Shown here: positions 3,001-52,025 of the stretch, piece after piece
Position numbering within the stretch: position 1 is the first letter of the stretch
Layout: the number at the start of each line of letters is the position of its first letter
DNA from: Podarcis bocagei
Lineage: Eukaryota
Strand: one strand, 5' to 3'
Length of the DNA: 64,000 nt
NCBI GenBank assembly: GCA_964188305.1
Contig: OZ076893.1
The notes under the pieces: model-generated
What the model saw: only the letters and a program-made list of their open reading frames with translations
What the model was told of the DNA's origin: nothing
Databases searched by the model: none
Program-made: the position numbers and the translations under genes

Positions 3001-3248
3001 ACAGTTTGGTCTGAAGCAGAGTTTCAGAAAAGTGGTTTGAGGATTGTTGCTCAGACATGATCAAGATATTGCTTCTGTGCATGGTGCCCGTGAATGCACC
3101 ATGGACAAGGACAAACAAGTATTGGCTGGATCAATCCTAGGTAGGTATTTGAGTGGCATACACTCTGGAAAGTAACCTAGTGGATACAGGGCCCTGAGGC
3201 TTTTACTGCAAGACTACTAATTGTATTTTTTCTTTACATTTCTTACAG

Positions 3249-3425
3249 GCCAGAATTTCCAAGGCAAGAATTTGTTAGGCCAGAATTTACAAGGCCAGAA
3301 TTTGCAATATTTGTAGGAGAGTTAACTCCCGAGGTGGATGATTTCTTGCTCTATGACTACTTTTTCAAAAGGTATCCATCTTCTGTAGACTGCAAAGTGG
3401 CCACAGATCTGCTTGGATATTCCAG
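3249..3425 (+). CDS. TRNAU1AP-like (C6orf52-lineage) RRM protein, internal exon, start of RRM2
   Basis: TTACAG|G...TCCAG|GTAAC. Translates (R)PEFPRQEFVRPEFTRPEFAIFVGELTPEVDDFLLYDYFFKRYPSSVDCKVATDLLGYS(R), resembling TRNAU1AP PEYSLFVGDLTPDVDD...YPSC (RNP2 IFVGEL). Upstream exons were not identified in the window. Confidence 0.85.
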
Positions 3426-4016
3426 GTAACTTATTAGAGAACAAGAAGCATTGGTGGTAAGAAACAGTATACAACTGAGGAGCTCAAAAGCTTTTTCGTA
3501 GTGAGCTCTGCACATCCAGAAACAAACGTGCAATCTCCAATAAGAAGAGAGAAGATAGACTATTGGTGTTCAGTCTTCTCATGAACCTGGTATCTCAATG
3601 GAAAATTGAGCATGTTTGGGAGGGAAATTCAGAGCTGCAGTGCTTAGTGACCGCTTACACTTACATAGAGAGGTCTGCTGTAGTTTGAGAAACCTGATAG
3701 GATCTAGATTTAATACACCATAGTTCTATATGATCATGTAACAAACGAGAGTAGTTTCTTGAACTATTTATGAAGTTGCATATCTTAAGTGCACATGTTG
3801 CATTTAATAAGGAAAGGAAGATAACATTAATCAAAATCAAGTGTAAGGAGAATGGTAAGGTGTCTCCAGTTTACAGGGGGCAAAGAGAAGTAGTCTGCAG
3901 CTAACATTTTTTGAAATGGAATTTATTTGACTGACCATTGGAAATCTAGGAGTCCACCAATGATGCAGTAACCATTTTTTTGGGTGTCATTTCATGACCA
4001 GTGACTTACATAGATG

Positions 4017-4838: not shown

Positions 4839-5184
4839 GAAGTATTTTCAGGGTTTCCGCTTGCACAATAGGACGTTTCCCCCCTTTTCTCCCTCTGTGT
4901 ACGCCATGCACCTTCCCCAAATCTGTTCCTGTAAGTTGGAGGAACCCCAGTACAAATTGGGGGCATGGGAAATTAGGAGGGGGAGAATGTTCCATTGCGC
5001 TAGGAAAAATCCTTGAACAGATGGAAGAAGAGACCTAGCACTATGATTCGACCCTGTATTCAGGTTAACTTTTTCTAGGGAATGTGGTTTTTGCTAGACT
5101 TTTTGCTAGACTTTCCATGGCATGATTGGTTTTATTTCATGCTTTAGATAACTTGTACTTTTTTTTTTTTGCCTTGTGTTTTAG

Positions 5185-5581
5185 ATTGAAAGCAGAATTT
5201 CAGCGGTACCAGCCCTATAGTTATAATGATTATTATCAAGACTATCAAAACTACTACCGCCAGTATAATTATGAGAGAAATGAACGCTTTGATCGCTACG
5301 AACGCCCTGACCGTTTTGAACGAGGTAACCGTTTTGGGGACCGTTTTCCTGAACGTTACCCTGAACAATTTGGGGACCGGTTTCCTGAACGTTATGCTGA
5401 GCGCTTTGGTTCCCGTTTTGCCGACCGCTACGGTGACTACCCTGAATATGGAGAATATAATGCTGAATATGGAGATTATAACGCTGAATACAATGACTAC
5501 AACTACAGCTATGCATCTTACGAAAGGATGCAACAGAGTGGAAATATGGGACAGCAAGCTATGAATCCAGCTGTATTTCAG
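5185..5581 (+). CDS. TRNAU1AP-like exon, Tyr-rich region with expanded tandem repeats
   Basis: Long polypyrimidine tract + TTAG|A...TTTCAG|GTATCC. LKAEFQRYQPYSYNDYYQDYQNYY resembles the TRNAU1AP Tyr-rich segment YSYNQYYQQYQNYY. In frame with flanking exons. Confidence 0.85.
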
Positions 5582-5686
5582 GTATCCACTTGAGCATACT
5601 TACATGCTTTTTACAAGGTCATTGGTAGAAATAATGGCTATATACCTTAAATATGGCTGTTGGGTGCTTTTTAACATCTGTCTATA

Positions 5687-5938
5687 CAGTGGTACCTCTG
5701 GATGCAAACGAGATCCGTTCCGGAGCCCCGTTCGCATCCTGAGCAGAACGCAACCTATGTCTGCGCATGCGTGGGTTGCAGTTCGCCGCTTCTGCACGTG
5801 CACGTGACGTCATTTTGAGCTTCTGTGCATGCGCAAGTGGTGAAACCCAGAAGTAACCCATTCCGTTACTTCCGGATCGCCACAGAACGCAACCTGAAAA
5901 CACTCAACCTGAAGCATATTTAATCCGAGGTTTGATTG
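5687..5938. mobile_element. Tc1/mariner-type MITE
   Basis: TA|CAGTGGTACCTC...GAGGTTTGATTG|TA: TA target duplication and degenerate TIRs. Confidence 0.75.
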
Positions 5939-6420
5939 TAATTGTAAACTTGTGCTGTTTTAAAACACACACAGTGAGAGGGCTGGCTGAACTAGGTCTA
6001 GGCTTTAAGAACTTTTGTAACCAATTGTATAGAGGTTTACTGTGAAGTACTGTCCAGTTCAGTGAGACTTGGTCCCAAGCCATATAGGATTATAGCTGTA
6101 CTGTATTCATGGATCATGTTTCTGCTTGATTCTTTTCTTTAACTGATTGTCCTTATTTAACATGAGTAATATTCAGACGAGACAAACCCTTGGAGTTTGT
6201 CCACCATTATACTGAAATGCAATAAACTCAAAATATAGCTCAGCTCAGTTGCATTAAATTACTAACTTTATGTGAGTTTAAGGTAAAAAGGAGGGTGGAG
6301 GAAGAAGCTGAGGATCAGGTTACAATGTTTATAGCAATTGTCGTTTAACGCTTCCTTTTTCAAAAATAGCAGATAGATGTTTTTTCTTTAGAGAAATGAT
6401 TCATGTTTTTCCTCCCCCAG

Positions 6421-6463
6421 GAGACCTCTGCTATGGTTATGAATGACGATCTAATAACAGAAG
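6421..6463 (+). CDS. TRNAU1AP-like small exon (ETSAMVMNDDLITE)
   Basis: TTTTTCCTCCCCCAG|GAG...GAAG|GTAATT, 43 nt, phase 0-1. It bridges the reading frame between 5581 and 8410. Confidence 0.75.
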
Positions 6464-6817
6464 GTAATTTTGATATTGTTAGTACAAGCAAGTGGACTTT
6501 GACGCTCATCTTAGTTAGGCAAGATCCAACAATGTGTCAGCAGTTGCAGTGAAATTCTTCTTCCTTATCTCCCTCTGCAGCCCCTGTACCCCAAGTCTGC
6601 TCCAAAGGGTCCCTCAACCCTCAAGCAGATTTCAGGGGTATGCAGGGGTGTGTGGAGGAAGGGTAAGTCTCACTGTAAGTGGAAATAACAATTGGATGTT
6701 GTCCGCCCCCCCTTTTTTTTCATTCTGCAAAATGTACTGCTCTCCAAAGAAAATATCTGAAATGTTGTTTTACAGCAGGGGTGGGAAACTCCTGTAAATC
6801 AAAGTGGTCCTTTAGGC

Positions 6818-7575
6818 CAGGGGTTGGCGAACTACGGTTCAGGGGCCAGATGTGGCCCCCCCGGCTCGTAAATCCAGCCCGCGGACCCTGCCGCCCACCC
6901 GGTCAGTCCTCACGCACTGCAGATGTCTTGCCGTGCGGGGACTGACTTCAGCAACGCTGGCATGGCTTCTGGGCGGGCGGCGACATGGGCATATCTTCAG
7001 ATTGGCTGCAGGAAGTTCCTGCAGCCAATCCGAAGCCTTGCCACCTGCGCACTGAGGTAAACCCGGCGTGGTCATGGACAGAGAGGCCAGCGGGTGGCAG
7101 GTCTGGGCTGCGCCATGGGCATCGTGACGGGCGTGTCATGGGGCTTCAGCTGGAGCTTGGCGCGCCTGCTGGCCCTGCACCTGGTGCCCGCTTGGCGCTG
7201 CTGTTGGTGGGGCACTTGGCAGCTGTGCTGGAGCAGCTGGAGGGCGAGCTGCATGCCGCCTGCCCGGCGCTCCGCATGCGTGGCCTGCCCACCGGCCTGG
7301 CCTCGGACGACGGGCCACAACGTGTGGTGCACACCGCCTGGGAGCCGCACAGGGACAGGCCGATGGAGCGGCTGCTGCTCGTCAACAATGCCGGTGAGCG
7401 GGCAGCACAGAGACGCGCTTCTGAGCGCGTGCAGAGCATGTTCCTCCTCTAAGTCCGGAGGCAGCTGTGGGACCGGCTTGCAGGGTATTTATATTTTTCA
7501 AAATACAGTCCGGCCCCCCACAAAGTTCGAGGGACAGTGGACCGGCCCCCTGATGAAAAAGTTTGCTGACCCCTG
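6818..7575. mobile_element. Non-autonomous hAT transposon carrying a captured gene fragment (Pack-hAT)
   Basis: Perfect 8-bp TSD CTTTAGGC (6810-6817 and 7576-7583). TIRs CAGGGGTTGGCGAACT / AGTTTGCTGACCCCTG match 13 of 16. Both ends are homologous to the MITE at 44496-44745. Confidence 0.9.
7074..7393 (+). pseudogene. SPR: Captured sepiapterin reductase (SPR) exon 1 fragment, frameshifted
   Basis: Two frames join as AGLGCAMGIVTGVSWGFSWSLARLLALHLVP / LALLLVGHLAAVLEQLEGELHAACPALRMRGLPTGLASDDGPQRVV...MERLLLVNNAG|GTGAG. This is collinear with SPR [39 protein letters not shown]...LRQLEAEL...LRVVRVPADL...LQRLLLINNAG, including SDR TGxxxGxG-like and NNAG motifs. Confidence 0.8.
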
Positions 7576-8405
7576 CTTTAGGCCCCTGTCCTTGAGTGTT
7601 TTTTGCCTGGTTGCAATGTGTCCTTGAACTGTGGTGATGTCTCTTGCTTATCTGGACACAGGATGGAGAGATGTGTGATGAGCATGGGAACCTCTGGCTT
7701 TTGCATAGCTGGAAAGTAGTGTACTGCAGTGTCATATTTGTTGCTCCATCGCCATTGTTTGCCTTTTGCCACACTAGCACTATTTAGTCCTAGGGAGGTT
7801 ATCCTTAAGGAAATGCAGCCCTCAGATTGAAACAGATTCCCCACTCCAGCATGATAAACACAATCCTTTGCATTCATGCTTTGAAATAAGTTTAACAGAG
7901 CTTGCTCCAGGTAAGTTTGTATAGCACTGCAGCCAAGCTTTGTTGGAAATTTACTGAATATGAGCATCATAAAAATAAGATTGCATGCAGTGTAGAATTT
8001 TTCTCCAGCAATGTAGCTACTGCAGGATACAAGATAATATGCAAATGTTGCATTCTTTATATAACTTTGTTTAAAAGTATTCTGGTGTACAGGTGGAAGC
8101 CCACTGCTATTTTAAAGATGACCTCTGAATTTTGTTCAGTGTCAAGAAAACCCTGTTTATCCCTTTTATGAGCTAACATAACACAAATTACACAAAAGTC
8201 ATTAATAACTAGAGAATCTGAAAATTAAACTCTTTTAAAATCATTTTATGGATCTTTTGATAAGAATGCATTCTGTACTTTAAGCTGTTCTGTAAAAAAT
8301 GAACAGAAGAAAATGAACAGAGAACACTGTTTTCCAAAGGCCCCCCCTCACTGTATAGTAGCTGTTCTAGTTTATTCCTTGCTCACTGATGTTTTGTTTG
8401 CTTAA

Positions 8406-8546
<141 letters not shown>

Positions 8547-8771
8547 AAGTGTCTTATGTTAACACCATAGCATGACTATTACGACCAAGGTGCTAAATTG
8601 ACATTTCTTCAACATTACTTTGGATCCTAAGTTTTTAAGCACGGTGTTGGATTTTGTTTTGCTATGCTTTGATGGCCTTCGTCATTTTGTTCATCACTCG
8701 GTATCTTGAAATCATGTAAATATTCTGGAAATGTAAAGAGTTAGTCTAAAGATAGACTTGCTTATGTAAAT

Positions 8772-8777
8772 AATAAA
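8772..8777 (+). terminator. Polyadenylation signal of the TRNAU1AP-like gene
   Basis: AATAAA about 225 nt after the stop codon, preceded by TGTA elements. Confidence 0.6.
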
Positions 8778-9466
8778 ACTTTGTTTCTGCAAACATGTCA
8801 GTTGGAACCTGTCATTACCTTACTAAGTATGTGATCTAGTTTCCAAAGTGTAGGGTTGGGGCTTTGTGGGTGTGGTCCTTTTACCTGGCTGGTCAAGACT
8901 GGTGACAGTGCTGAACTAGATGGACCTTAGGTCTTTGATTAATTTTGTTGCTGTTGTGTAGTTTGCATAAGCTTTCCTAATGATGTAAGCAAATGCATTA
9001 TTAATTGAGTAAGAGCAAAGGGCAGTGTAGTCCCATACTGTCTCCGGGGTGGCTGGCCAGATTCTAGGGCAAAATTTACAAACAGGTCCCGAAGGAGATA
9101 ACTGTTGCCCCTTAGTCCACATACTAACCAGAGTTGGGCTGCCTTTTCAACATGAAAATCCCATTGGCTAGTTGATACAGCTTTAAATGAACCTTCGTGA
9201 TTTCACCATTCATTCAAGAGTAAGCAGTTGTGTTTTTGTGGAAGCGAATCTGCCAGTAAAGATCAAAAGCAAGGGGTGAAAAAAATATTCACATTACAGA
9301 CCTATACCCACCTTAGGAGTAAGACTACTTTATTCTTATTGTGAAAATGTGATATTTGAGTGGAGCAGTTTTCCTTGTTCCTCTGCAAAAATACAAAGTG
9401 ACACTGTTCCTGAGGCCATACTGATCAACTTGTTTTGGAGATTGTGCTCATTATACGAAGCACGTT

Positions 9467-10459: not shown

Positions 10460-11900
10460 CTCCGGCCCTGTAAGGGTTAAAAAAGGCGCCTTGGAAATCA
10501 TGTTCATTCCAGAATAGCGAGTTTCCGGCCTTCGCTGCGGCATATATCGCGAGATTCTGTGGCGCATCAATGCGTCAGATCGGCAACCACCCCGCGAGAG
10601 GGCGGAGTGTGTCCATATGCTCTCTGCGCAGCCTCGGATTTCCAGAACTACATTTCCCGTGGGCGCTCATGGGCCGTCGGCGGGCGACTGGAATGAGGCA
10701 GGATGGCGGGTCGCGCGGTTTGGTGACGCCAAGCTGTCCGGGCGGGTGTCCTCTGGTTGGTCGGGAGGAAAGGAAGGAGGGGGAGAATCTCGGGCGGGCT
10801 AGACGGTGACGGTGTTGGTGGAGGTGGGGGGGGGGAGAGAAAGGGTAGGAAAGGGAGGGGGAAGTGGAGCGGCTAGGGACGGCCTCGGCGCGCGCGCGCG
10901 CGCTAGCCAAGGAGCGAGAGGGAGGCAGGCATCCTGTGAGGGCGCGAGGCAGGCCGCGCGGCGCGGGGCATCGCCATAGAGACAGTGACAGCACAGAACG
11001 GGATTGGGGCCAGGGGTGGGGGCCGAGAGGAGCGTGAGGGAGGGAAAGAAGCGTGAGGGGGGAGAGAAAGCGCGCGCGCGGGCGCGCGCACAGGGGGTGG
11101 CCGGGCTAGGCCGGGCCTCTCTGTTTGCGCCGTGCGTGCGTGCGTGCGGGTTGCGGGTGGGTGGGAGGGAGGCCGGCAAGGCTCGGGAGAGGTCCCAATA
11201 TGGATTCGGGGGAAAGCGGCGGAGCTCCGGGAGGAGGAGGAGGAGGTGGTGGAAGCGGCGGCGGCAGCGGCGGCTACGAAACCGGCGGCGGGAAGATCCG
11301 GACGCGGCGATACCACCTGGCAGCGGCCTCCTCGAAGCCTTACCCGAGAAACAAGCAGGTGAGGGAGGCCGAGCGGGGGAGCATGTGGTGTGCGAGACCG
11401 GCGGCTGGACACATAATATATCTGTATGAAGGAAGCGGCGCCGCCAGCCCCGGAATTGGCCGGCGAGGCTCCGGCTCTGCCCTCACGGGCCCCCTGGGAG
11501 CCGCCGTTGTCGGCCTGAGAAATGGCCAGGCCATATTCTGGGTGGGTGAACTACCTGGTACCTCGAGGAGGAAGAGAAAGCATTTTCTGCCCCCCTTTTT
11601 TTTCTTCTTCTGAGGGGGAGAGAAGGGGAAGTGTGTGGGGTCTATGTGAGGCGGGGGAGGCGTTGATTTCCGAGGGCGATCCCAGCGATATGAATGATTC
11701 AAGTGCAGGGTGGGGGGAATGTTTAGAGGGGTGGGATTCCCCTTCTCCCGTTTTGAGGCACGCGCTTGGGTTCTGTGAGATTTCTCCCCTTCCTGGATTT
11801 CTGTTACGGCGGGAAGAAAAGGAAGGAAGGGGAGGGCAGGCAAAGGGGAAAACGTGCCTCCTGCGAATCAAGGCGCCGATTCGCTGTTGTGCGATGTCTC
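10460..11900. promoter_or_regulatory. CpG island / NUP153 promoter, 5'UTR and exon 1
   Basis: Sharp GC/CpG enrichment around the ATG at 11200. Motifs: TATCGCGAGA (BANP/CGCG type, 10545-10554), ACTACATTTCCC (ZNF143/THAP11 type, 10647-10658), TTCCGG ETS core (~10523), GC boxes and a (CG)n tract. Confidence 0.85.
11200..11358 (+). CDS. NUP153: Nuclear pore complex protein Nup153, exon 1
   Basis: AATATGG Kozak context. MDSGESGG...GGGKIRTRRYH...KPYPRNKQ|GTGAG; GGGKIRTRR is the NUP153 N-terminal motif. Confidence 0.92.
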
Positions 11901-14814: not shown

Positions 14815-15471
14815 TAGGGCTGAGCGATGTCTGGTTCTTAATATCATGATATATTGCTAGATAAACATTGCAATATACAGATATATCACAATGTCTGAAA
14901 TAAGGATGGAACTATGTAGAGGCGAATGGGGTAATGTCCTGGCAACTGCTACTACTTAGGGGTCTAAATCGGATACATTTTTTACTTATCTTTATCGTTA
15001 CAACTGTTATTTTAAAGTACAGAGCAACAGGGGCTGCAGGAATCATGAGAAAAGCAATGACTGGCTACATTCATGATCCCTTCCAACTCTACAATTCTAT
15101 GATTCTTTATCCACATCACAATTTTTTTACATAGCACATGTGCACATCACAATTCAAATTATATCACCATGTTGTATACAGTTGTATCTTGGTTGTCTCG
15201 GACGTTTTGGCTCCCAAACGCCGCAAACCCAGATTGATTGTTCCGGTTTGCAAACGTTCTTTTGGAACCCGAACATCTGACAGGACTTCCGCAGCTTCTG
15301 ATTGCAGCCAATTAGAAGTTGTGATTTGGTTTCTGAACGTTTTGGAAGTCAGAAGGACTTCTGGAACGGATTCCATTCGACTTCCAAGGTACGATTATAT
15401 TATGAAACTGTTACCATAATGTGGACTTCAAACTGATTTTGGATGATGTATTGATACATCGCCCAGCCCTA
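14815..15471. mobile_element. Non-autonomous hAT-like element with nested inserts
   Basis: TIRs TAGGGCTGAGCGATGT / ACATCGCCCAGCCCTA; flanks CTGGATAT / TTAGATAT (6 of 8 match, degenerate TSD). Confidence 0.7.
15179..15397. mobile_element. Mariner-type MITE nested in the hAT element
   Basis: TA|CAGTTGTATCTTGG...CCAAGGTACGATT; homologous to 16015-16256. Confidence 0.7.
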
Positions 15472-16014: not shown

Positions 16015-16256
16015 CAGTCGTACCTTGGATCTTGAATGACTTGCAAGACAAACGTTTTGGGTCCTGAATGCTGCAAACTTGGAAGTGATTGTTCAGGTTT
16101 GCAAATGTTCTTTGGAACCCGAACATGCGTCGCTGCTTCCGATTGGCTGCAGGAGCTTTCTGCAGCCAATTGGAAGCTGTGCCTTGGTTTCCGAATCAAG
16201 TTGGAAGTCAAACGGACTTCCGGAACAGATTCCGTTCAACTTCCAAGGTACCACTG
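16015..16256. mobile_element. Mariner-type MITE
   Basis: TA|CAGTCGTACCTTGGA...TCCAAGGTACCACTG|TA. Confidence 0.85.
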
Positions 16257-21922: not shown

Positions 21923-22159
21923 AAGGGGTTAGCAACCTTTTTCAGCCGTGGGCCAGTCCACCGTCCCTCAGACCATGTGGTGGGCCGGACTATTTTTTTT
22001 GGGGGGGGGGGAATTAACAAATTCCTATGCCCCACAAATAACTCAGAGATGCATTTTAAATAAAAGGACACCTTCTACTCATGTAGATCTGTCTGCAGGC
22101 CGGATTTAGAAGGCAATTGGGCCGCATCCGGCCCCTGGGCCTTAGGTTGCCTACCCCTG
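21923..22159. mobile_element. hAT MITE (empty relative of 6818-7575)
   Basis: 8-bp TSD CTCTACAA on both sides; ends AAGGGGTTAGCAACC / GGTTGCCTACCCCTG; homologous to 44496-44745. Confidence 0.85.
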
Positions 22160-37244: not shown

Positions 37245-38028
37245 AATATGGCACTTTAAAGAAAACAGTTGTAGGGATGTTGCACTGTAATAAGCGTTCT
37301 ATCAGTGCCAGCATTTCTGCTTGCCCAAAGGAATGATTTCCCCTCTCCTTCCTCTGGTGGGGGGGGGGCAGGTTCTCAGAGCCAAATGGGCGGGAGGGGG
37401 AGAGGAGGCAGAAAGCCTCATTGCTTTGATGGAAGTAGTTGTATGGGCTTCTGCTAGCAGGATCAGGCAGTTAAATCTGGCCCTCTATATATTTTCTTAA
37501 TCCAGTCTCATATATAATACCAATAATGCCAGTTTTTGAAAAAAGGAATAGCCACATTGAGAGAGAGTATTGTCTCCAACTTTCAAATATATTGCCAGTT
37601 TTCTTTAGGAATAGGGAATTTCAAATCAATTTCCATTGTTACCTACATTTCTCATTGCTAGACTCAAGATAAATCTGGATAACATAAATTTTAGAATGTG
37701 GACCTTTCATTGGTTTGGTATGAATTACAAAGGTTTCAAACTCAGTTGTCTGTATAAATTTCTGATTTGTTCAATAACTTGGTTGGAACAGAGACTGCAA
37801 GTGCCAACAATATGTATACATATTTGTGTAAGGGTTTCATGTTATATGCAGTGATTTTTACCATACTATGATAGTCATTCTTCTTACCCAGCTATTTCTG
37901 TGCCTGCATAACCATTTGCGCAGTATGGTTCATCAATGAATCTTCTGTTTTAAAATCGTTTGCTTGGCTTTCCTGTAAAAGTAGAGTCTTTGTTAGGAAC
38001 TCAGACTATTTCCTTTTCTCTTTCTTAG

Positions 38029-38649
38029 GCTTTGCATCTTCAACCACATACTCATCCGCAGCCGCGCCACCTGTTACAGCAAGCACAGTAGTTTATACAA
38101 GGCCTGCAATAAGTACTTTCTCCGGAACCGTTTCAGGACTTGGAGATGCTTTGAAACAAGGGTCAGCCCATTGGCAGTGCGATACGTGTCTTGTGCAAAA
38201 CAAGCTGGCAGATAACAAATGTGTAGCCTGCCAAGCCGCTAAAGTGCCGATGTCAGATGGTACTAAGCAGACTGGTACTCAGTTTAACTCAGCCTTGAAA
38301 GCAGCTCATTCTACAAAGGGGACACAGGGCTTTGGAGACAAGTTTAAGGCAGCAGCTGGAACTTGGGACTGTGATACTTGCTTGGTCCAGAACAAACCGG
38401 AGGCTACAAAATGTGTGGCATGTGAGACACCAAAACCTGGGACAGGAGTAAAACCAGCCTTTGTGTTTCCTGCAGTCACAGACAATGTAACAACAGTGAC
38501 TTCCTCTTCTGGCTCTACTGATCTCACGGTCAGTTTTGGATTTGGAGACAAATTCAAGAAGCCAAAAGATGCTTGGGAATGTTCTGTGTGCTTAGTGTCA
38601 AATAAGGCAGAGGATAGCAAATGTGTTGCCTGTCAGTCGGACAAACCAG
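38029..38649 (+). CDS. NUP153: NUP153 exon 16 (RanBP2-type zinc fingers 1-3)
   Basis: CTTAG|GC...CCAG|GTGAGT; three W-x-C-x2-C-x3-N-x6-C-x2-C fingers (WQCDTCLVQN, WDCDTCLVQN, WECSVCLVSN). Confidence 0.96.
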
Positions 38650-38986
38650 GTGAGTTTGCCATATTTGGTCATTGATTAGGGTGGGACATATCCATCTATA
38701 ATCCTAAACATCTTTATTATGGCATGGAACTTAGTTTTGAGGAAACAGGCATTGTGCTGTGTGAAGAACCCTATCTTGAAAAGAAAACAATAGAGGGCAC
38801 CACTGAATATTTACTGGAGTTTTAATATGTAAGAACATATGGGAAGTACAGACTAACATTTCATGCATGGGTTCCGTTTCTGGCCCCTGCGCTCATCAGC
38901 AGAGCATGCCCCACCTTCATTTTGGATCCAAAAGGACCTGCGTGTCTGTGCACACCATTTGGATGCGCCTAAAATGGTCACCCTGA

Positions 38987-40138: not shown

Positions 40139-40768
40139 ATAATAACAGTAATTTTCTCCCAGTTATTCATGAAATAAATGGAATTTTATAGCTTTCTGAA
40201 ACTATTTTGCATGTTACCCTGAACAGTTAAAGTTCATGAGGTTGTCACTGGTATATTAATTACTATAGTACTGAATTTAAGAAGATAATTTCCCTTGTCA
40301 AAATTACGGTTCTGGTGATTTCAAAATACTCTAGTTGGTTTACAAATATTTTTCCCTTTCATTCTCACCTGAGATCTCTTATGAAGACGTTGAAGAAAAT
40401 ATCACCTATTTCCCTATAAAAATATAGACATAGAAAAGGTCATAAACTGGAATACCTAACAATTAAAAAGTATGGGCAACTTTAATTGTTGCTTCAGATG
40501 AAGAATACACAAATAGCACTTGCTAGGACAGAGCAGAAAAAATTGCTAAATTCTAGGAGTATAAATCATTTTAATTTAGATGGTTTAGATTGCTTTAACA
40601 TAGCAAGTTTTCCTAAGTTTCCCTTCGTCAAAGGGCAATTATTGCAGTTTGGATAATTCAATTTCTAAGTTTCTCTTGCAAGTTTCAAATAGGTATTTTC
40701 AGCTTTGTTTTTGGTCTACATGGGCAGAACTGCTAATGGTTTACTTTATGCTATGTTTCATTATCTAG

Positions 40769-40963
40769 GAAGTTCAGTGCCTGTGGTGAGTAGCAGTGCT
40801 TCCTCTTTACCTGCTTTTTCTGGAGGATTTCTAGGCTTAGACAAATTCAAGAAGCCGGAGGGAAGCTGGGACTGCGAAACATGCTTAGTACAAAACAAAG
40901 CAGATGCCACAAAGTGTGTTGCTTGTGAGAGTTCAAAACCAGGCAGCAAGACTGAACTCAAAG
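40769..40963 (+). CDS. NUP153: NUP153 exon 17 (zinc finger 4)
   Basis: TCTAG|GA...AAAG|GTAGG; DKFKKPEGSWDCETCLVQNKADATKCVACESSKPG. Confidence 0.95.
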
Positions 40964-41544
40964 GTAGGTAAAGAGTATAAATGCTCTCTCAAAAAAATCA
41001 TGTGTGCGTATTCTGCTCCTTAATTTTCTCCTCCTTTTTAATTTGCCCCTCTACCCACGACTCAGGCTTTCACCTCTAAATAAGGAGAGCCATGCCCAGA
41101 AGCAGTTTTCTGCAGTTGTGTCACTTGTTGGATCCAAAACTGCTCGGCTAAGTCAGATAAAAGTACCTGAAAAGTACATCTCAATGTGGATGAGAGATGT
41201 ATATTCAAATCTATGCTAAGTGCACATTCAATGAAAACAAAGGAGTGAATATAGATCACATCTGCAATGGATACACCTCCAATTTATCCCCATATCCTTT
41301 AAACTCTGAAAGGTCCCCTCACCCTATCAAGTTAAGGAACCTTTGGGTCTAATTGCCCCCCCAACCCTTTCTCCTCCAGGCAGCCAAAAGGCATTGTCTG
41401 ATTTCAGGAATGCAGTGCATCTGACAAAATCACTCAAGGGTTCAAGGCAGGGCCAGAAAGGGGTATGTTGCCTGGGGAAGTCCCAAGGACTAGGTAGAGA
41501 GGTCTAGAGAGTAGCATTTGTCCTGGGCCTAAGCTTAGCCGTTC

Positions 41545-42340: not shown

Positions 42341-43374
42341 AGCAATTCCTGAATCAGGAGCACATACCTCCTGTAACTTCACTTTCCCATCTCTGCAGCC
42401 CTTTAAATGGCAGTTTCCCCCTCTTACCGGGGGGGGGGGGGAGGAGGAGAGAAACTGGGCTTGGTGCAGTTGAGCGCTTTATGGGGATAGGTCCCAGACT
42501 GAATGAAAGCAAGCTCTTCTCAATTTCCTTTTACTGAACCTTCCAATTCCAGGTGATGAGGGCTCATGCCTGCATGCTGCTCTCTGCTGCCAGCAAGTCT
42601 TGGCAGCCTGAGAGCGGTGTACATGTTTATTAACCCATTTGTAGCAATTGTGCTGCTGCTGCTCCCCCCCCCGCCCCCCCCCCACTTTCAAAGTAAGATT
42701 TTCCTGCATTCCTCAGGGATAGTCCTCTCCTGTCTACACTGGCTCCCTCTCCTCTCCTTTCCCCATCCCTCAGCATTCAGGGCATGCACTTTACAAGCAG
42801 GGGGACTGATTTCATTCCAGTGAAATTTGCTAACTTGCTAAATTTGCTTTTAAAAAGGCAAGTGGCCTTTGAAAAAACATACTTTTATAGAATATCCTAG
42901 TCTTCAAATAGAATTCATTAAATCTCCCCAGAATGTGGCCATGTGTAGTCACACTTGTCAGGTCACACCCTGTGTATAATTACATTACCTTAATAGAATA
43001 TTTTTAATTCTTTCAGTAACATTTTACGTACACCTCTATTCACTTTATGTGAATGGTGAGGCCCTCTTCAAATTTACTGAGGAAAATACATTTATCCTCT
43101 TTCCAAATTACTCTGTGCTTCTTATTTCCTAACCTGAACTCATCAGTAATCCGTGAGCTAGAATGAGTTATTATAACACCAGTTATGGTGGTGAAGAGAA
43201 GTCACAGTATTGGGAAGTGAGAATGATTATTTTTCTAACAAAAAACTTTTTTTACATAAAAATGTTGCTATGATTGATTTACAAAACAATTAAGACTTGA
43301 CCCTGCAGCATTTCTCTGTATAAAAAAGGTTATGTTGGGTTTGTAACACATTTGGTGTTTTATGTTATTTTCAG

Positions 43375-44238
43375 GTTTTGGAACTGCTGCTGTTTCTACA
43401 GTCCCATCTACTACTTCCTTCAAATTTGGTATTCAGTCATCACCGTCAGAGCTGCCTCAGACGCTGGGAAATGCAGAAAAAAGTTTCAAATTTGGAGAGC
43501 AAACAGGATTCAAATTTGGTATTACATCAGAGCTGGGATCATCAACAAACACAATGACTGGAGGATTTAAATTCTCGAAAACAGAAGGGTCCAAACTGGG
43601 AAGCTTTCCTTTGGAATCTGAATCGGAGGACAGTGTGAAAGATGGCAAGAGCAATAGTAGTTTCAACTTTGGACTTCCCTCTGGGGCTAAAAGTACGCCT
43701 TCTACATCATTTCAGTTTGGAATAGCTAACCTTGGACAGCAAGAGAAGAAAGAAGGACTTAGCAAGCCTGCTGGAGGAGGCTTTACTTTCGGCACAGGTT
43801 CCACAGCCTCTGCAGCTGCACCTGAGAGTAAAACTGGAATAAGCGGTTTCAAATTTGGTAATACAGAGGAAAAGGAAACTTCAGTCACTCCCTTCTCCTT
43901 TAAGAAAGTGGAGGAGAAAAAAGATGAAAACCCTTCAACAAAAGGTGGCTTTACTTTTGGTAATGTAGAATCCGTGCCCACCCCGCAGCTTGTTTTGGGA
44001 AGGACAGATGAAAAACCGGACACTGTTGCCCCTTCCTATCCATCAGTATTTGGAAAGAAAGCAGAAAATGAAGAATCAAAGGCACAACCCATGTTTCCAT
44101 TTGCGAAGGCAGAGCAAACCAAAGATGACAGCACAGCAAAATCTGGATTTAGTTTCAGCCTAGCAAAACCAGCAGAGAAAGAAACTGAACAACAAGCAAA
44201 GCCTGCTTTTATGTTTGGAGCACAAGCAAGCACTGCAG
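43375..44238 (+). CDS. NUP153: NUP153 exon 18 (FxFG repeats)
   Basis: TTCAG|GT...GCAG|GTAGG; 864-nt open exon rich in FKFG/FNFG/FTFG. Confidence 0.96.
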
Positions 44239-44495
44239 GTAGGTACAAAAATTCCTTATAATTTATCCCATCATGTTGTGAAACGGATTTTTTTTGACAG
44301 GTGATTTAAGAAACTGAACTATGAAGAGACCTTGAGATCAATGATAGAGGCTTGTAATATTATCTCTGTTGTTGTCCTTTTGCTTCTGAAATAATCTGTT
44401 AATGAACACCACTTTTTGAAAGCCTACAGAAGTGTTTTATTTTGAAATGGGCAGTGTTCTTGGAAAAGGCAAATACCCCCTGGATAGCTTAAGGC

Positions 44496-44745
44496 CAGGG
44501 GTCAGCAAACTTTTTCAGCAGGGGGCCGGTCCACTGTTCCTTAGACCTTGTGGGGGACCGGACTATATTTTGAAAAAAAATAATGAACGAATTCCTATGC
44601 CCCACAAATAACCCAGAGATGCATTTTAAATAAAATGACACATTCTACTCATGTAAAAACACACTGATTCCCAGACCGTCCATGGGCTGGATTTAGAAGG
44701 TGATTGGGCCGGATCCGGCCCCTGGCCTTAGTTTGCCTACCCATG
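44496..44745. mobile_element. hAT MITE (empty relative of 6818-7575)
   Basis: CAGGGGTCAGCAAACT...AGTTTGCCTACCCATG, flanked on both sides by GCTTAAGGC. Confidence 0.9.
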
Positions 44746-47700
44746 GCTTAAGGCCTACAGTGGGAAACTAGCCATACAAATAAGGTACGCAGTTCCTGTA
44801 GGCCTGTAATCTCTCGATAAAGCTCAGCGCAAGCTCAGGCAACCTGCCTGTAAGCAGGGTGCAAATGTGATGCTTTGTAACAACTCATTTGATCTTCTAA
44901 ATTGGAGTCTTACAAACATTTTATTTAAGAATTCTGATAGCAAACCTAATTAAGACAAACTGAGTTTATTTTAGAAGAGTTGGTAGTGGGAACTATTATT
45001 TACACTTAAATATTTTAAGTGAATATTGTAGATGTTCTTTTGCTATGGAATAGCAGCCATTTCTGATTATAAATCCTTAGGATTGTGCATAGGTCATTTA
45101 ATTGCCAGCTTTTGGAAACTGCTGTCACCATTAGATTTGGGATGCTGTTCAGTTGAATGACTTATTACCAGGCTGTAGGTCTTTACAGTGGCTGATCATA
45201 AAACATTAAACGAAAATGTATTTGTGGGCACTTCAGTTTCCAGGGTGAATATCAAATAAACCATGACAAATTTTGTGGGCTGCCTTAGGGGTCCCAAATA
45301 ACTAAGAAGAACTCTTCAATCTTTTGAACATATTTGGCACATTTAATGTGCATAACATAGTTGGCTATAAATAACTGTTTTCAATACTTAATGATTTAAT
45401 TTTCATCAGTTATTTAAATTTTGTCCTTGGCATCAGTATCTCTTATAGCTTTTCTAAATTAATGCTTTAAATGCTTGACTATCAAGTTCACTGATTTGGG
45501 GGGGTTTTTACTGGTCAAATAGCCAATACTAAACAACAGCTCTTAAAGAAAGCAATGGTTTCAGAGTAGGAAATTGGAACAGGAATCATACTTTGAAAAA
45601 ATGAATACATTAATTGAACGAGAATTGTATGTAACAGTCTTTGCACATGGATAATTATGAATGAATTATTTCATAGGAGCTGGGGGGAAATTACAATCAG
45701 GGAAATAACCACAGAACATCAGGGTCTTATAATTACTGTTTTATTATTTATTACAAGGGGAGAGAGATAGCATGGAGCAAGAGAACGAAGACACAAAGTT
45801 CAGTAACAACTTATGATAGATGCAAGATGGAAAAGGAAGCCAATATTAGAAATTGGACATGGGAATTATATGGTCAAAGCAGTGTGCATAACATCAAATG
45901 AACAGAAGAATTGAGAACAGATTTTTAAGATGGAGGAGGAATATAAAACATTACAATGATTGAGTCTGCAAAAAGGGAATGTAAAAGTGTCCCCATTATA
46001 GAAAGAGACTAATGATCTTAGAGTTAAGAAGAAAAACTGGATTGAAGACAAGGGAATTATGTGAGAAAATAATCCAAGTAAATGTAAGGAAAGGGAAAAA
46101 TAATTTCGTGAACGAAGAATTGAGAAAGAACAGGCATGAGGCAAAACCAATGTGTTTGGTTTTAGATGAAATAGGAGCTTAGTGAGAAGACACTTGGTGA
46201 GGCATCTAGAACTATTGAGATAAGAGGCAAGATCGTGAGCAGAGAAATGGAGATGTAAGTCAATAGGTTAAAAACAGTTTAAGATAAAGACATGGATAAT
46301 GGAAGCAAAAGGAAGATTATATAGGACACCTGTAACAGAACATTGTAGATCCTAGGAATCGGTCTCTCTTACTAAAGAGTTTTACTACAGTTTTACTAAA
46401 TTAAAACAAAATATAAAGGAGAGGGAGAAAAGTAAAGACTGTTGAGGAAAATAATGACATTAGTTTAAAAAAATGCTATTCATGCTTTTTTAAGATCAGA
46501 CAAAACAATGGAAACAGAAAAAATAGAATATTGGAAGGAGGTGGAGGAGATCCTGGGATTTAAAAATAAGATACTGTACTTCACATTTATGTAGCTGCCA
46601 CTGACTATTCAACGCATTTTGCATACATAATTAGAAATTTGAGTGTTCCCCTCCAGTAAAAATAATGAAAATGGAATAAGCAAGTCAAAAGCAGTACTAG
46701 TAAAGGAAAGAGAGAGAATGCAAGCACCGCCCACTGAATAATTTTGGAAACATTCTGAAGGAGAAAAATAGAATGATATAGGAAATGGGAGAGTTGAAAG
46801 GAAGGTTTTTTGGAAGTAATGAGAGTATGTCCAAGAGAACAGTATGTGAAGATGAAGAGAAGATCAACATAGGAGCTAAACACAGAGGAGCTATAGGAGA
46901 AGCATAAAGAAGGAATAGAGTGAAGAGTGAAAAGAGGCTGGTTGGAAAAATGTTTACCAACATAGGCCAGGGTTTATTCAAGGTGAAAAGGAGAAGGAAT
47001 ATCAGACCAAGAATACAAATTTGACACCCTCTGCTGTTCTGCCACTGTTGCATTGTCATTTGCATGTGGTTGGTAGAGCAACTGCAAGGTTCAATCAAGG
47101 CCTTGCTATTTAGACCACGTTCTGGCACACAAACACATCTATGTCAACCCTGTTTTCATGTCACCTGACATCAGGATATCTTATTGCAAAGTGGGTGGCA
47201 ATTGATCAACCTGGTGTAGCAGTCCTATGCCTTGGTGCAAGCATAGTGCTGACCCATTTCAGGCAACATTGGTTTAAATTATCTATGGTTTATCAGAAGG
47301 AGCATTGTGCCTGCACATCTCATCCTCTTTATGGGGTGTTAAAACAATAATTTCTTGTAACATCTGAACTGAGAAATTGTGACCTCATCTCCCAACTGCA
47401 AACCAGGTTTTGAAAATTCAAGTTTGATATTCTGCTTTTTATTTAACTTTATTTAACATTTATTTTTAATTAATTAAATCATACTTTCCTGGTGCAAATA
47501 TAATGGGCAACTGTTTGTGATTTAGTTTTGGGTTATGGCTCATTAGAGAAGAAACCACGTTGAGCATAGTGCTTGTCCCAAGTTCAGTAAATCATGATTT
47601 ATTAGACAGCAGTTGTCATACCTGAAATGACTGGCCGTTGTGTCTCATAACTGTGATGCCATTTGTGCAAAACATGGTATAGCTTTCGTAGGATTCTTAG

Positions 47701-48665: not shown

Positions 48666-48723
48666 GCTTTACTCTGCATCTTCATTTCTTTCTAAAAATA
48701 ATGTTAATCCCTTTCACTTTCAG

Positions 48724-49107
48724 ATCCAGGATCAGCAAAGTCTACATTTGGCTTCCTGAGCTCTAGTTCCTCCAACACTGCTGTGCAAAGTGTTGCTGCT
48801 GCTGGTGGTGCTGGTGGCGGCGGCGGCAGTGGCGTGTTCAGCAGCACCACCTCTTCCTCAAATCCTGCCCCACCAAGCTTTTTGTTTGGACAGGCCAGCA
48901 ACACTGTGAGCAGCTCTGCTTTTGGTAATCCCTCTGACTCCAGTACAACCCAGTCCTTTGGGTTCTCCCAAGAGAGCAAGCCACCAACAACCACTTCCAA
49001 TACAAGTGCTCCTGCTCCATTTCTTTTCGGTACAGCAGCCACCACTAACAGTGCAGCCAACACTGGCTTCAGTTTTGCAGCAGCCACCACAACAGCAGGT
49101 CCTGCAG
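48724..49107 (+). CDS. NUP153: NUP153 exon 19 (FG region)
   Basis: TTTCAG|AT...GCAG|GTATG; DPGSAKSTFGFLSSSSS...FLFGQ...FLFGT. Confidence 0.92.
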
Positions 49108-50049
49108 GTATGCTCAGAACTTGAAGAGATTTGGTTTGTGGCTGTCTATTGAGGGATTTGTTTTCCAGAAACTTGGCTGTAGAACAACATACAGAGGGCT
49201 TTGAAAAAGGTTGACTTGGCAAACTTATCAGTGCTATGACAGTTACGTTCCATAACAAATTCAACTGGTTCAAATTGAATGATACTTATATAATGTTCTT
49301 CCTAAGTGGGGGGGGGGGGGGGAGAGAGAGAGAGAGACCAGCTTTTCTAAAGCTACCCAGTGTGGTGTTGGCTGAGCTGACATTGAACAGGGATTGCACA
49401 GTTCATAATCGTAACTGGCAGTGCTACACCAGCTACATACATTCCATTGATGGGCTCTGTGCGCCAAATACTGCTGTAATGTTTTACTGTAGCAATGTGA
49501 ATGTTCAAAACAACGCTTTCCTCTGCACTCACTGGAAGTCTTCTTCCTACTGCTACTTTGCCTTCAGCCAGCTGTCTCTTGATGCCTTCTGTTTTCCCTT
49601 TGTCAATGTGCCTACCTTCCCTTCAATTGTTTCCTGTTGCAAAAATGGAGTGCAGTGTTACAGTGGCAACATGTATGTGCATTAGTTTTAGGCACTTGAT
49701 GTTCAGTAGAGGACTGCTTTCATCCCTAGCAGTGGACTGACCTGGTGATAAGGTTCATATGTACCCATTTTTAACTGGGTAGGAGTTTTCTCTGAGGCAT
49801 GGTCACATGCACTTTTGTAGGGACCCTCTCAGTTAACATACAGGAATTAGCAATGCAAATCCACTTGTAGTCAGAGATAAAAGAGCAGGTAGAGTTACTG
49901 AACATTTCAGACAGTTTAACATTAAAGATCAGCTGAAATAAACTGTTAAATAAGCAAAAGCCTATATACCCCAGGGTAGAATCTAAATAGTTAAATTCTT
50001 AACCATCGAGAGCAGTTCTCAAGTTTATTCTGCTCACTTGTTTTTCTAG

Positions 50050-50325
50050 GTTCATCCTCTTCATTTGTGTTTGGTTCTGGGTCTTCAGCTCCTCCAACTG
50101 GTCCTGCATTTGGTGCCAGCCAAACACCAACATTTGGTCAAAGTCAAGGCTCCAGCCAGCCCCCTGCTCCAACCTTTGGATCACTCTCCTCCTCATTATT
50201 TTCTACTGGTGCTCAGCCTGCGCCTCCAGCTTTTGGCTCTGTGTCAAGCAGTACACAGCCTCCTGTCTTTGGACAACAAGCTACCCAACCACCTAGTTTT
50301 GGCTCTAGTACAGCTCCTAATTCTG
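50050..50325 (+). CDS. NUP153: NUP153 exon 20 (PxFG repeats)
   Basis: TTCTAG|GT...TCTG|GTAAG; PAFGASQTPTFGQSQG...PPVFGQQ. Confidence 0.93.
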
Positions 50326-50859
50326 GTAAGTAAAACCTCTAGAGGTCTTGGTTGTAGGCTGGTGGTGTTGCTAAGGCAGAGCTATGTTTAAGTGGTTCCA
50401 TCCTAATTTTTCAATCTTCTTTGCATGCTAACCTGTGCTAGCATCATGAGTGCCACTTTAAAATACTTCTTGAATCAAATTCTGTTTGCAAATTAACTAT
50501 TGATTTGAAAAGTTGAGTAGTATTGATGTAATACTAGAAACAGAAAATGATCTAGATATGCTTCAAGTGGTATGTGCTTACCTCCATATAGTGTGCATGC
50601 AAGGTCAAGTCAAAACATCTGTAGACGGAGCACAAGTGATTTCTTGGTTTGAGAATCCCTTATACACACACATTCTTTGTGCAAATGGCATAGAATTTAT
50701 AAATGATAAGTTCCTCTTAACTCTGTGCTCAGAATTTTTTGTTTTGTATTGATAAAATTACAGCTCAGTGGGATACTGAACATAGGAGTGTAAAATGTTT
50801 ACGTGGAGACAGATAAACGTCATTGTCAAAACACACAATGTATTTTGAAAGATCTAGTT

Positions 50860-50972
50860 CAGGGGTCAGCAACCTTTTTCAGCTGTGGGATGGTCCACCG
50901 TCCCTCAGACCATGTGGTGGGCCGGACTATATTTTGATGAAAAACAACGAATTCCTATGCCCCACAAATAAC
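50860..50972. mobile_element. Truncated hAT MITE (one end only)
   Basis: CAGGGGTCAGCAACC...GAATTCCTATGCCCCACAAATAAC, homologous to the left halves of 21923 and 44496. Confidence 0.75.
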
Positions 50973-51358
50973 AAAAAACTACATTAGCTGTGCCAATGGA
51001 TTTGGACATGGCGAAATGGATTTTTTTCTTTTTTGTATTAGAAACTGCTTTTGAAGGTTGCATTGGTTTCAGAAGAGTTTTGCCATGTAGCATCGGAAGG
51101 TCTTGTTAAATAAATGTGTGTGCTCTTGAACATGCAATTTTATTTTATTTTTAGATCTAGCTCTGTGGAATCCAGAATATCTTATTGGTGCACTCCAACA
51201 ATGCAGTAATTGCTTTGTGAACTACTATACTTGCATTCTCCTCCTTTGTAATCACCTATTTAGTGCTTCTTAAGAAATTAAAGTTCCCCATAGACAAATA
51301 ATTGCGAAACAATGCTTTTCATCCAAGAGGCTAAGTCTCTGTTATCTCGCTCTCTTAG

Positions 51359-51512
51359 GCCCGGTGTTCCAGTTTGGAAGTAGTACTAATTTCAACTTTA
51401 CAGGCAACAGCCCAGGAGTATTTACCTTTGGTGCAGCTTCTGGTGCTCCAGCACAGCCTGCAGGTGGCTCTTCGGGATTTCCATTCACCCAGCCTTCATC
51501 ATTTAACCCAGG
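51359..51512 (+). CDS. NUP153: NUP153 exon 21
   Basis: CTTAG|GC...CCAGG|GTAAG; PVFQFGSSTNFNFTGNSPGVFTFGA. Confidence 0.92.
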
Positions 51513-52025
51513 GTAAGAAGGGCTTAAGACTTGGCATGATAGTGTGGCGGGGTCTATATATATTGAAGGTGCAATCTCCTAGTGCTTCCATGCACATGTT
51601 GTAATGTAAGGGAATCATTTTCAGGTACATCTATGGGAATTCCACACTATTGAATAGCAGTGCTGGGGTGGGGGGCAGGATGAACTTGCATTAATTGAAT
51701 CTACAAATTTGGTGTAAATTTAAATATCAATCTAGCTGTGGCTATTGGAAATGAATATTTAAAGCTGATGGCATTAAGCCTTTCAGATCAATTATACGCC
51801 TGCAGCTATCCTTGAAACAAAAGTTTAGATTACAACTCCTTAACTGAGTGACATAATCTCTAAAAAAATGATGTATTTAGTAAATGATCTATGGGATACT
51901 CACTCAAGTGCCTGGTTTTTTTACAGTGGATTTAAAATTTTTGTTCCACAATATTAGAAGCTTTAATACATACGACTTATCACTTTTAAGTTCCTCATGT
52001 TTAATTCTTTTCCTCCCTAAAGCAG

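Follow-up and report, generated by a model that had tools for sequence, protein, structure and literature searches.

A sepiapterin reductase exon 1 carried by a Pack-hAT-type element in Podarcis bocagei, probably one copy of a mobilised lacertid family

The window analysed here, a stretch of 64,000 nucleotides of Podarcis bocagei (contig OZ076893.1), contains at 6818-7575 a transposon of 758 bp with a hAT-type shell and, inside that shell, a decayed copy of the first exon of the sepiapterin reductase gene (SPR), which acts in the pigment pathway, together with the beginning of its first intron. The shared junctions and differing target-site duplications of loaded copies at other sites, together with the depth of the cargo, make it highly probable that the window element belongs to a Pack-hAT family of lacertids that has been mobilised and exists in many copies.

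Anatomy of the shell and its cargo

The transposon is flanked by a perfect 8-bp target-site duplication, CTTTAGGC, read directly at 6810-6817 on the left and in identical letters at 7576-7583 on the right (both unstranded). The left arm of the MITE shell (6818-6886, plus strand) was recognised from an inverted-repeat pair and from its match to a MITE, and it begins with the inverted end CAGGGGTTGGCGAACT at 6818-6833. The right arm (7483-7575, plus strand) was recognised from MITE matches of 81-90% and terminates in the corresponding inverted end at 7560-7575. These two 16-nt ends are 81% complementary and each opens with CAGGGG. Among the MITEs of the window, those at 44496, 50860 and 21924 match 7494-7575 of the right arm with 90%, 83% and 81% identity respectively, and 6816-6886 on the left is 75% identical to the opposite end of the MITE at 44496-44747. 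As the arms match opposite ends of the 44496 MITE, the element is reversed relative to it. Plain MITEs also carry 8-bp duplications of their own, CTCTACAA in the case of 21924-22159 and another 8-bp sequence at 44496. Cargo-free relatives of the shell are thus represented by the three MITEs of the window at 44496, 21924 and 50860 and by one in P. lilfordi (43602-43922 of locus L002). The left-arm variant is matched at 80% or more by about 13-20 contigs per genome in Podarcis genomes, and the right arm reaches a depth of about 15,000 times single copy in Podarcis contigs at a likeness of at least 80%.

Short inverted ends that open with CAG or TAG are typical of hAT elements. Such ends are present here as CAGGGG at both termini, and the 8-bp duplication, a further hAT feature, is found in the three loaded copies as well as in the plain MITEs. 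From the duplication and the CAG-type ends, the shell can be assigned putatively to the hAT superfamily. A transposase gene is absent from the 758 bp; the open reading frames are read-throughs of the cargo only, and Pfam gave no match for the two SPR-frame pieces described below, which are short and decayed.

The initial annotation had proposed a 758-bp element with a perfect 8-bp duplication, CAGGGG-type ends, and arms resembling the MITEs at 21923, 44496 and 50860. All of this was read directly or recovered by alignment, with 75-90% identity depending on the arm. It had also proposed that about 590 bp of GC-rich, SPR-derived DNA replace the AT-rich MITE core, and this claim held in part. When the element was aligned with plain MITEs and two loaded copies, homology to the plain MITEs ended after 6886 and resumed at about 7483. 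The AT-rich core of the plain MITE is absent, and GC-rich DNA (GC 0.62-0.72, against 0.33-0.45 in the surrounding intron) stands in its place. The replacement is therefore upheld, and the SPR origin applies only to the part from about 7062 or 7070 to 7482. The cargo is a mosaic: SPR accounts for only about 415 bp out of some 590 bp of core, and 6887-7061 is not derived from it.

The transition into SPR sequence lies in 7048-7073 (plus strand), a linker followed by the final ~4-12 bp of the SPR 5′ leader; gene homology begins at about 7062-7070, and the blastn matches begin at 7070. At this 5′ edge, a CCCGGC...GTGGTC stretch is possibly homologous to the SPR leader with a 6-bp gap, in a weak alignment. 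The decayed exon 1 occupies 7074-7393 (plus strand), from the ATG to the first base of a split codon, and was delimited by translations, PDB matches and DNA alignment to the SPR genes of four lacertids (P. muralis, L003; P. lilfordi, L004; Zootoca vivipara, L005; Lacerta agilis, L006). The ATG at 7074 and the exon/intron boundary G/GTGAGC at 7393/7394 were read directly. The segment 7394-7482 (plus strand), with the donor GTGAGC first, corresponds to the opening ~87-89 bp of SPR intron 1 when aligned to the introns of P. muralis, P. lilfordi and L. agilis; the SPR match passes the donor and continues for about 87 bp to GGCTTG(CA), after which the MITE arm follows.

The frame-3 piece (7097-7192) has sepiapterin reductases as its best PDB matches and is collinear with their residues 3-32 (E 0.03); those of the frame-2 piece (7183-7395) are again sepiapterin reductases, over residues 44-104 (E 7e-5) and ending at NNAG. 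In a search of 5.8 billion proteins, the P. muralis SPR protein was 73% identical over a frame-2 piece of 71 residues (67-137 of the query ORF 6985-7449), and several short lacertid proteins labelled 'hypothetical' or 'SPR-like' were found as well. At the DNA level, the cargo from ~7062/7070 to 7482 is 81-85% identical to the SPR genes of the four lacertids, the values for 7070-7480 being 83.4% with the P. muralis locus (L003, 3997-4411) and 80.8% with the P. lilfordi locus (L004). In all four lacertid genes exon 1 consists of 108 codons plus one nucleotide, followed by GTGAGC (phase 1). Only this exon, out of the three SPR exons, is in the cargo. The ATG, the two overlapping SPR-like frames and the donor of the initial annotation are accordingly all present; its identification of SPR, the phase-1 first intron that it named, and the match that it expected at the SPR locus and into intron 1 proved right.

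A coding sequence within a repeat might also be a processed retrocopy of SPR or an independent insertion that landed in a MITE, and nothing more than this position speaks for either. The match enters intron 1 for about 87 bp and not exon 2, the cargo has neither a poly-A nor a target-site duplication of its own, and the MITE core is replaced by the cargo and not interrupted by it. Since intron 1 sequence is retained, the capture was from unspliced DNA and a retrocopy is excluded, as had been argued in the annotation; the probability left to a retrocopy or an independent insertion, taken together, is negligible. At the level of sequence the cargo is shown to be a genomic copy of SPR that comprises the leader tail, the complete exon 1, the donor and ~87 bp of intron 1.

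The non-SPR part of the mosaic begins with GC-rich filler at 6887-6981 (plus strand), which contains a hairpin and a GGGCGGG box. This filler is common to all three loaded copies aligned (the window copy and the P. lilfordi copies L001 and L002), and no match to it was found in the SPR loci, in the 4 kb upstream of SPR or in the rest of the window. It is followed by a palindromic segment (6982-7047, unstranded), an inverted repeat with 27-nt arms and inverted ATTGG/CCAAT boxes. The core of the palindrome, 6995-7037 (43 bp), is the centre of a separate palindromic MITE and is 84-86% identical to the MITE at 16020-16252; a further copy of this CCAAT-palindrome MITE lies at 15202-15392. The depth of the core in Podarcis contigs is some 5000 times that of single-copy sequence, and loose ends fall precisely on 6995 and 7037. 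The palindromic segment is missing in the L002 copy and doubled in the L001 copy.

The CCAAT palindrome was considered as an SPR promoter element and rejected, as it is a high-copy MITE core that is missing from one loaded copy. Capture of the SPR promoter was also ruled out: the gene match starts 4-12 bp before the ATG, and the 4 kb upstream of SPR contain no match to 6887-7061.

Loaded copies at other sites and the mode of capture

Three loaded copies were inspected as DNA with their duplications, namely the window copy and the two P. lilfordi copies. L001 and L002, both located by way of annotated ORFs, agree with the window element in left arm, filler, SPR fragment, right arm and junctions. 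The perfect 8-bp duplications differ among them, being CTTTAGGC in the window, AGCTGGAG at L001 and GTCTGGGG at L002; loaded copies with different duplications had been anticipated by the initial annotation. The same junctions combined with different 8-bp duplications indicate that the element transposed after loading.

Contigs of three Podarcis genomes were placed on 5000-9000 at 80% likeness or more. Over 7144-7411, the depth was 473-499 in run X2, 474-499 in run X7 and 1172-1286 in run X11, with single-copy depths of about 13, about 8-12 and about 24-30 respectively. Variable sites in the SPR part were covered by 19-32 distinct contigs. These values suggest ~30-50 loaded copies per genome at identities of at least 80%, a figure that is a summed contig depth and no true copy count, for which 'dozens' is the safer wording. 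Deletion derivatives are present among the Podarcis contigs, with joints 6891>7052 and 7067>7364.

Protein models derived from the SPR exon were retrieved by a profile search, eight from P. lilfordi on seven chromosomes and two from P. muralis. Six models extend into the captured intron (P0001, P0005, P0012, P0013, P0014 and P0042), and one of these, P0012 of P. muralis, goes further into the MITE arm. Two Zootoca models, P0003 and P0006, look alike; on protein models, the SPR-loaded element is thus probable outside Podarcis, in Zootoca. An 'SPR-like' model of Rhineura was tried as a member of the family and ruled out, as it is without hAT arms.

Existing annotations list the exon-1 look-alikes under the names 'sepiapterin reductase-like', hypothetical protein and chimeric RPL27-like protein. 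A possible example of a chimeric transcript is the Zootoca model, in which the SPR exon is fused to an RPL27-like body.

The initial annotation had left open whether the loaded element had transposed or the capture had taken place in situ. For an in-place capture, a plain MITE at this site would have had its core replaced by SPR sequence during gap repair, independently of transposition. Such an event would agree with the intact duplication and the presence of both ends, and most animal Pack-TIRs are single-copy products of gap filling (Tan et al. 2021, PMC8277862). However, identical arm/cargo junctions are found at two other loci with different duplications and in the P. muralis model P0012, the cargo is present at about 30-50 times single-copy depth, and three Podarcis genomes showed neither a plain MITE nor an empty site here. 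In-place capture is very improbable for the window copy. From the other loaded copies and the ~30-50x depth of the cargo it follows that the window copy came in already loaded, and the question is settled in favour of transposition of the loaded element by the differing duplications and the depth. Gap filling may be a description of the founding event at another locus.

The founding capture would have happened once, in an ancestral lacertid; the junctions shared by three copies and one protein model point to a single event. In the proposed mechanism, the AT-rich core of a transposase-less hAT-type MITE would have been swapped for a mosaic of host DNA by template switching, either at a stalled fork or while a double-strand gap was being repaired, aided by short microhomology on the 3′ side. 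The 3′ junction of the cargo lies within a TTG...GG patch that is common to the plain MITE (TTTGTGGGGCAT) and the SPR intron (CTTGCACGG), where the microhomology amounts to only about 3 bp; template switching with at most ~3 bp of microhomology at this junction fits. Gap repair and template switching at a stalled fork are the two capture routes discussed in PMC8277862. The loaded element was then cut and pasted to many sites, with a new 8-bp duplication at each, a movement that would have depended on hAT transposase supplied in trans. After its insertion, the window copy has decayed like methylated junk, through CpG loss and two frame-shifting deletions.

Age, decay and setting in the host intron

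An empty site with a single CTTTAGGC in related lizards, expected by the initial annotation, did not appear in the three Podarcis genomes; the loaded insertion at this site is shared by the three species. Left flank, inverted end and cargo are joined in contigs of two further Podarcis organisms, E and G, the differences amounting to 1.4% and 2.5% respectively. The insertion is shown to predate the split of the three sampled Podarcis species.

The copies diverge by 17-19% from each other and by 15-20% from the SPR genes. When the window copy is compared with the gene majority, 34 of the 57 differences (60%) are CpG transitions, and the CpG count of the exon is 33 in the window copy vs 68-70 in three lacertid genes and 60 in Zootoca. 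A 4-bp deletion after 7088, also found in L001, and a 1-bp deletion after 7189 shift the reading frame, first from 1 to 3 and then to 2. Examined for an intact frame and the TGxxxGxG motif of a functional SDR, the window copy thus has two frame shifts and a changed cofactor motif, TGVSWGFS in place of the TGASRGFG of the SPR gene. The captured exon is decayed, and its letters give no sign of constraint. The loss of CpGs is the pattern that would be expected of an unmethylated CpG island turned into methylated transposon DNA.

In the tree, the split between copies and genes received values of 100/99, which drop to a weak 62/79 with CpG-prone columns masked; the topology is star-like. These data would fit a burst that followed shortly on one capture event. 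The non-CpG divergence of about 5%, under an assumed substitution rate, suggests tens of millions of years.

The element is intronic and lies in sense orientation in a TRNAU1AP-like gene. A host exon at ~3290-3426 matches the SECp43 RRM structure 2DHG (E 1.6e-9), and 5134-5669, 6340-6473 and 8350-8751 are covered by same-strand RNA from a congener. With the same orientation as the host gene and an intact donor at 7394, the captured exon might be in use by way of its ATG and GT donor, either within the TRNAU1AP-like gene (as an alternative or cassette exon) or as the start exon of chimeric transcripts. The sense depth of the congener RNA over 7144-7411 is 10-11; the intron on either side has 0-4 and the bins of host exons have 13-54. 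Gene models of P. lilfordi and Zootoca (P0002, P0003 and P0006) splice from this donor in other copies. However, every RNA read over the pseudo-exon has the letters of the true SPR gene at 7134, 7224, 7226 and 7295, and for 94% of the material aligned from the RNA run, the continuation does not resemble the window. Cross-mapping of true SPR mRNA is at least as likely an explanation of these reads. No joints to host exons were listed for the one congener RNA run, the frame is broken twice, and the supporting gene models are predictions. Use of the captured exon is on this evidence unlikely.

Reads over the pseudo-exon were also considered as expression of the window copy itself and set aside; they bear the letters of the true gene and are unassignable. 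The window copy is inferred to be without function today, though its ATG and intact GT donor remain within the host intron.

Relation to known Pack elements

The features by which a Pack-TIR is recognised are found together here, namely inverted ends with a duplication, cargo-free relatives of the arms, an extant host parent gene, and no transposase. In plants, the capture and amplification of gene fragments are common; plant Pack elements are far more numerous, and they carry GC-rich fragments that are often mosaics from more than one locus. Plant Pack-MULEs and Pack-TYPE elements (Pack-CACTA, Pack-hAT; Catoni et al. 2019, PMC6379663; Gisby and Catoni 2022, PMC8903248) are like the SPR family in that inverted-end shells amplify gene fragments. 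The plant elements differ from it in belonging to another kingdom and mostly to another superfamily.

In animals, 370 Pack-TIRs, mostly hAT, have been reported from 100 genomes, and four of them are multicopy (Tan et al. 2021, Nat Commun 12:4280; PMC8277862). The two multicopy families described there comprise three copies in a frog and, for the fly Ssk-FB4, three loci of which one is tandemly duplicated. The SPR family resembles Pack-hAT-N8_XT of Xenopus tropicalis (PMC8277862) in its non-autonomous hAT shell, its cargo of a host-gene 5′ fragment and the position of the parent gene elsewhere; in both, the copies have distinct target-site duplications, which shows transposition after capture. 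Unlike the cases of Tan et al. (PMC8277862), the SPR family has a lacertid host, its depth suggests dozens of copies vs three, its cargo is a coding first exon with the start of an intron and not UTR, and it is old and decayed, not young.

Neither elements of this type in lacertids nor copies of SPR were the subject of any paper found in a literature search. The results support the view that the SPR cargo belongs to one member of an amplified, old and decayed Pack-hAT family, which is of a known kind and has a copy number notable for a vertebrate.

Andrade et al. (2019) mapped the orange colour of P. muralis upstream of SPR, with no copy-number variants at the locus itself. The decayed SPR exon-1 copies are located at other genomic sites; they matter for annotation and leave that result untouched. 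Dispersed as they are, these look-alikes give rise to errors in the annotation of lacertid genomes and in read mapping.

As multicopy Pack-TIRs are rare in animals (4 of 370 in the one broad survey, PMC8277862), the lacertid family, with its dozens of copies, its clean junctions and a parent gene that is clear, is a good natural example. It is useful for studying the uptake of host DNA by hAT elements, and for following the fate of a CpG island within a transposon, where half of the CpGs have been lost. It is possible, though we hold it only tentatively, that a hAT lineage of lacertids prefers the CpG-island 5′ ends of genes, each consisting of a first exon with its ATG and donor, and amplifies every loaded shell to dozens of copies, the SPR element being one instance of this. 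Ready-made start exons with donors would then be distributed in introns throughout the genome and may give rise to chimeric transcripts. If such a CpG-island-capturing hAT lineage does exist, a Pack system of plant-like scale would be known for the first time in a vertebrate, namely in wall lizards.

Genes and a probable promoter region in the window

The TRNAU1AP-like (SECp43) gene, whose intron hosts the Pack element, lies on the plus strand with exons at 3181-3426, 5126-5590, ~6340-6473 and ~8350-8751. The RRM exon matches PDB 2DHG and a Tyr/Arg-rich exon is also present; the RNA from which the coverage blocks over this gene were obtained comes from a congener. At 6342-6343, the window reads CG whereas all three DNA runs, one of them from an individual of the same species, read GC. 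A mistake in the assembly is a likely source of the CG, or else a variant private to the animal sequenced for the reference.

A GC-rich, CpG-island-like stretch (10500-11900), probably a promoter region, separates the TRNAU1AP-like gene from the one that follows. A NUP153-like gene occupies 22710-51600 on the plus strand. Its exons encode RanBP2-type zinc fingers at 37875-38672 (Pfam PF00641, E 4e-35) and 40693-40968 (same family, E 8e-14), and FG repeats at 43347-44258, 48708-49121, 49995-50330 and 51274-51513.

Copies of the MITE shell and other repeats

Plain copies of the MITE shell, devoid of cargo, are found at 21924-22159, 44496-44747 and 50860-50972. The first is flanked by the duplication CTCTACAA and the first base of its inverted end is mutated; the third is cut off after ~113 bp. 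As estimated by depth, the right arm of the shell occurs ~15,000 times per genome.

A palindromic MITE with the ends GTACCTTGGA...TCCAAGGTAC is present in two copies, at 16020-16252 and 15202-15392. Its 43-bp centre, bearing inverted ATTGG/CCAAT boxes, recurs within the Pack cargo at 6995-7037, and this core is the only portion of the palindromic MITE found in the Pack element. Thousands of occurrences of the core per genome are indicated by depth. Another very high-copy repeat is located at 5685-5940, with ~5,000-9,000 times the single-copy depth in the three Podarcis genomes and loose ends that are sharp at 5684/5685.

SPR exon-1 look-alikes in other genomes

In Rhineura floridana, a 113-aa model annotated as 'sepiapterin reductase-like' (CM057606.1; locus L007, 2001-2342) resembles SPR exon 1, reads past its donor into the intron, and carries TGASWGLG where SPR has TGASRGFG. 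The hAT arms are absent at this model, which may be either the worm lizard's own SPR, possibly decaying, or a duplicate. Decayed SPR exon-1 peptides are also seen in two gene models, joined to an RPL27-like body in Zootoca vivipara (P0006, '60S ribosomal protein L27-like', 220 aa) and to an unrelated N-terminal part in P. lilfordi (P0018, 182 aa). Either both models reflect chimeric transcripts that further Pack-element copies have seeded, or they are annotation artefacts.
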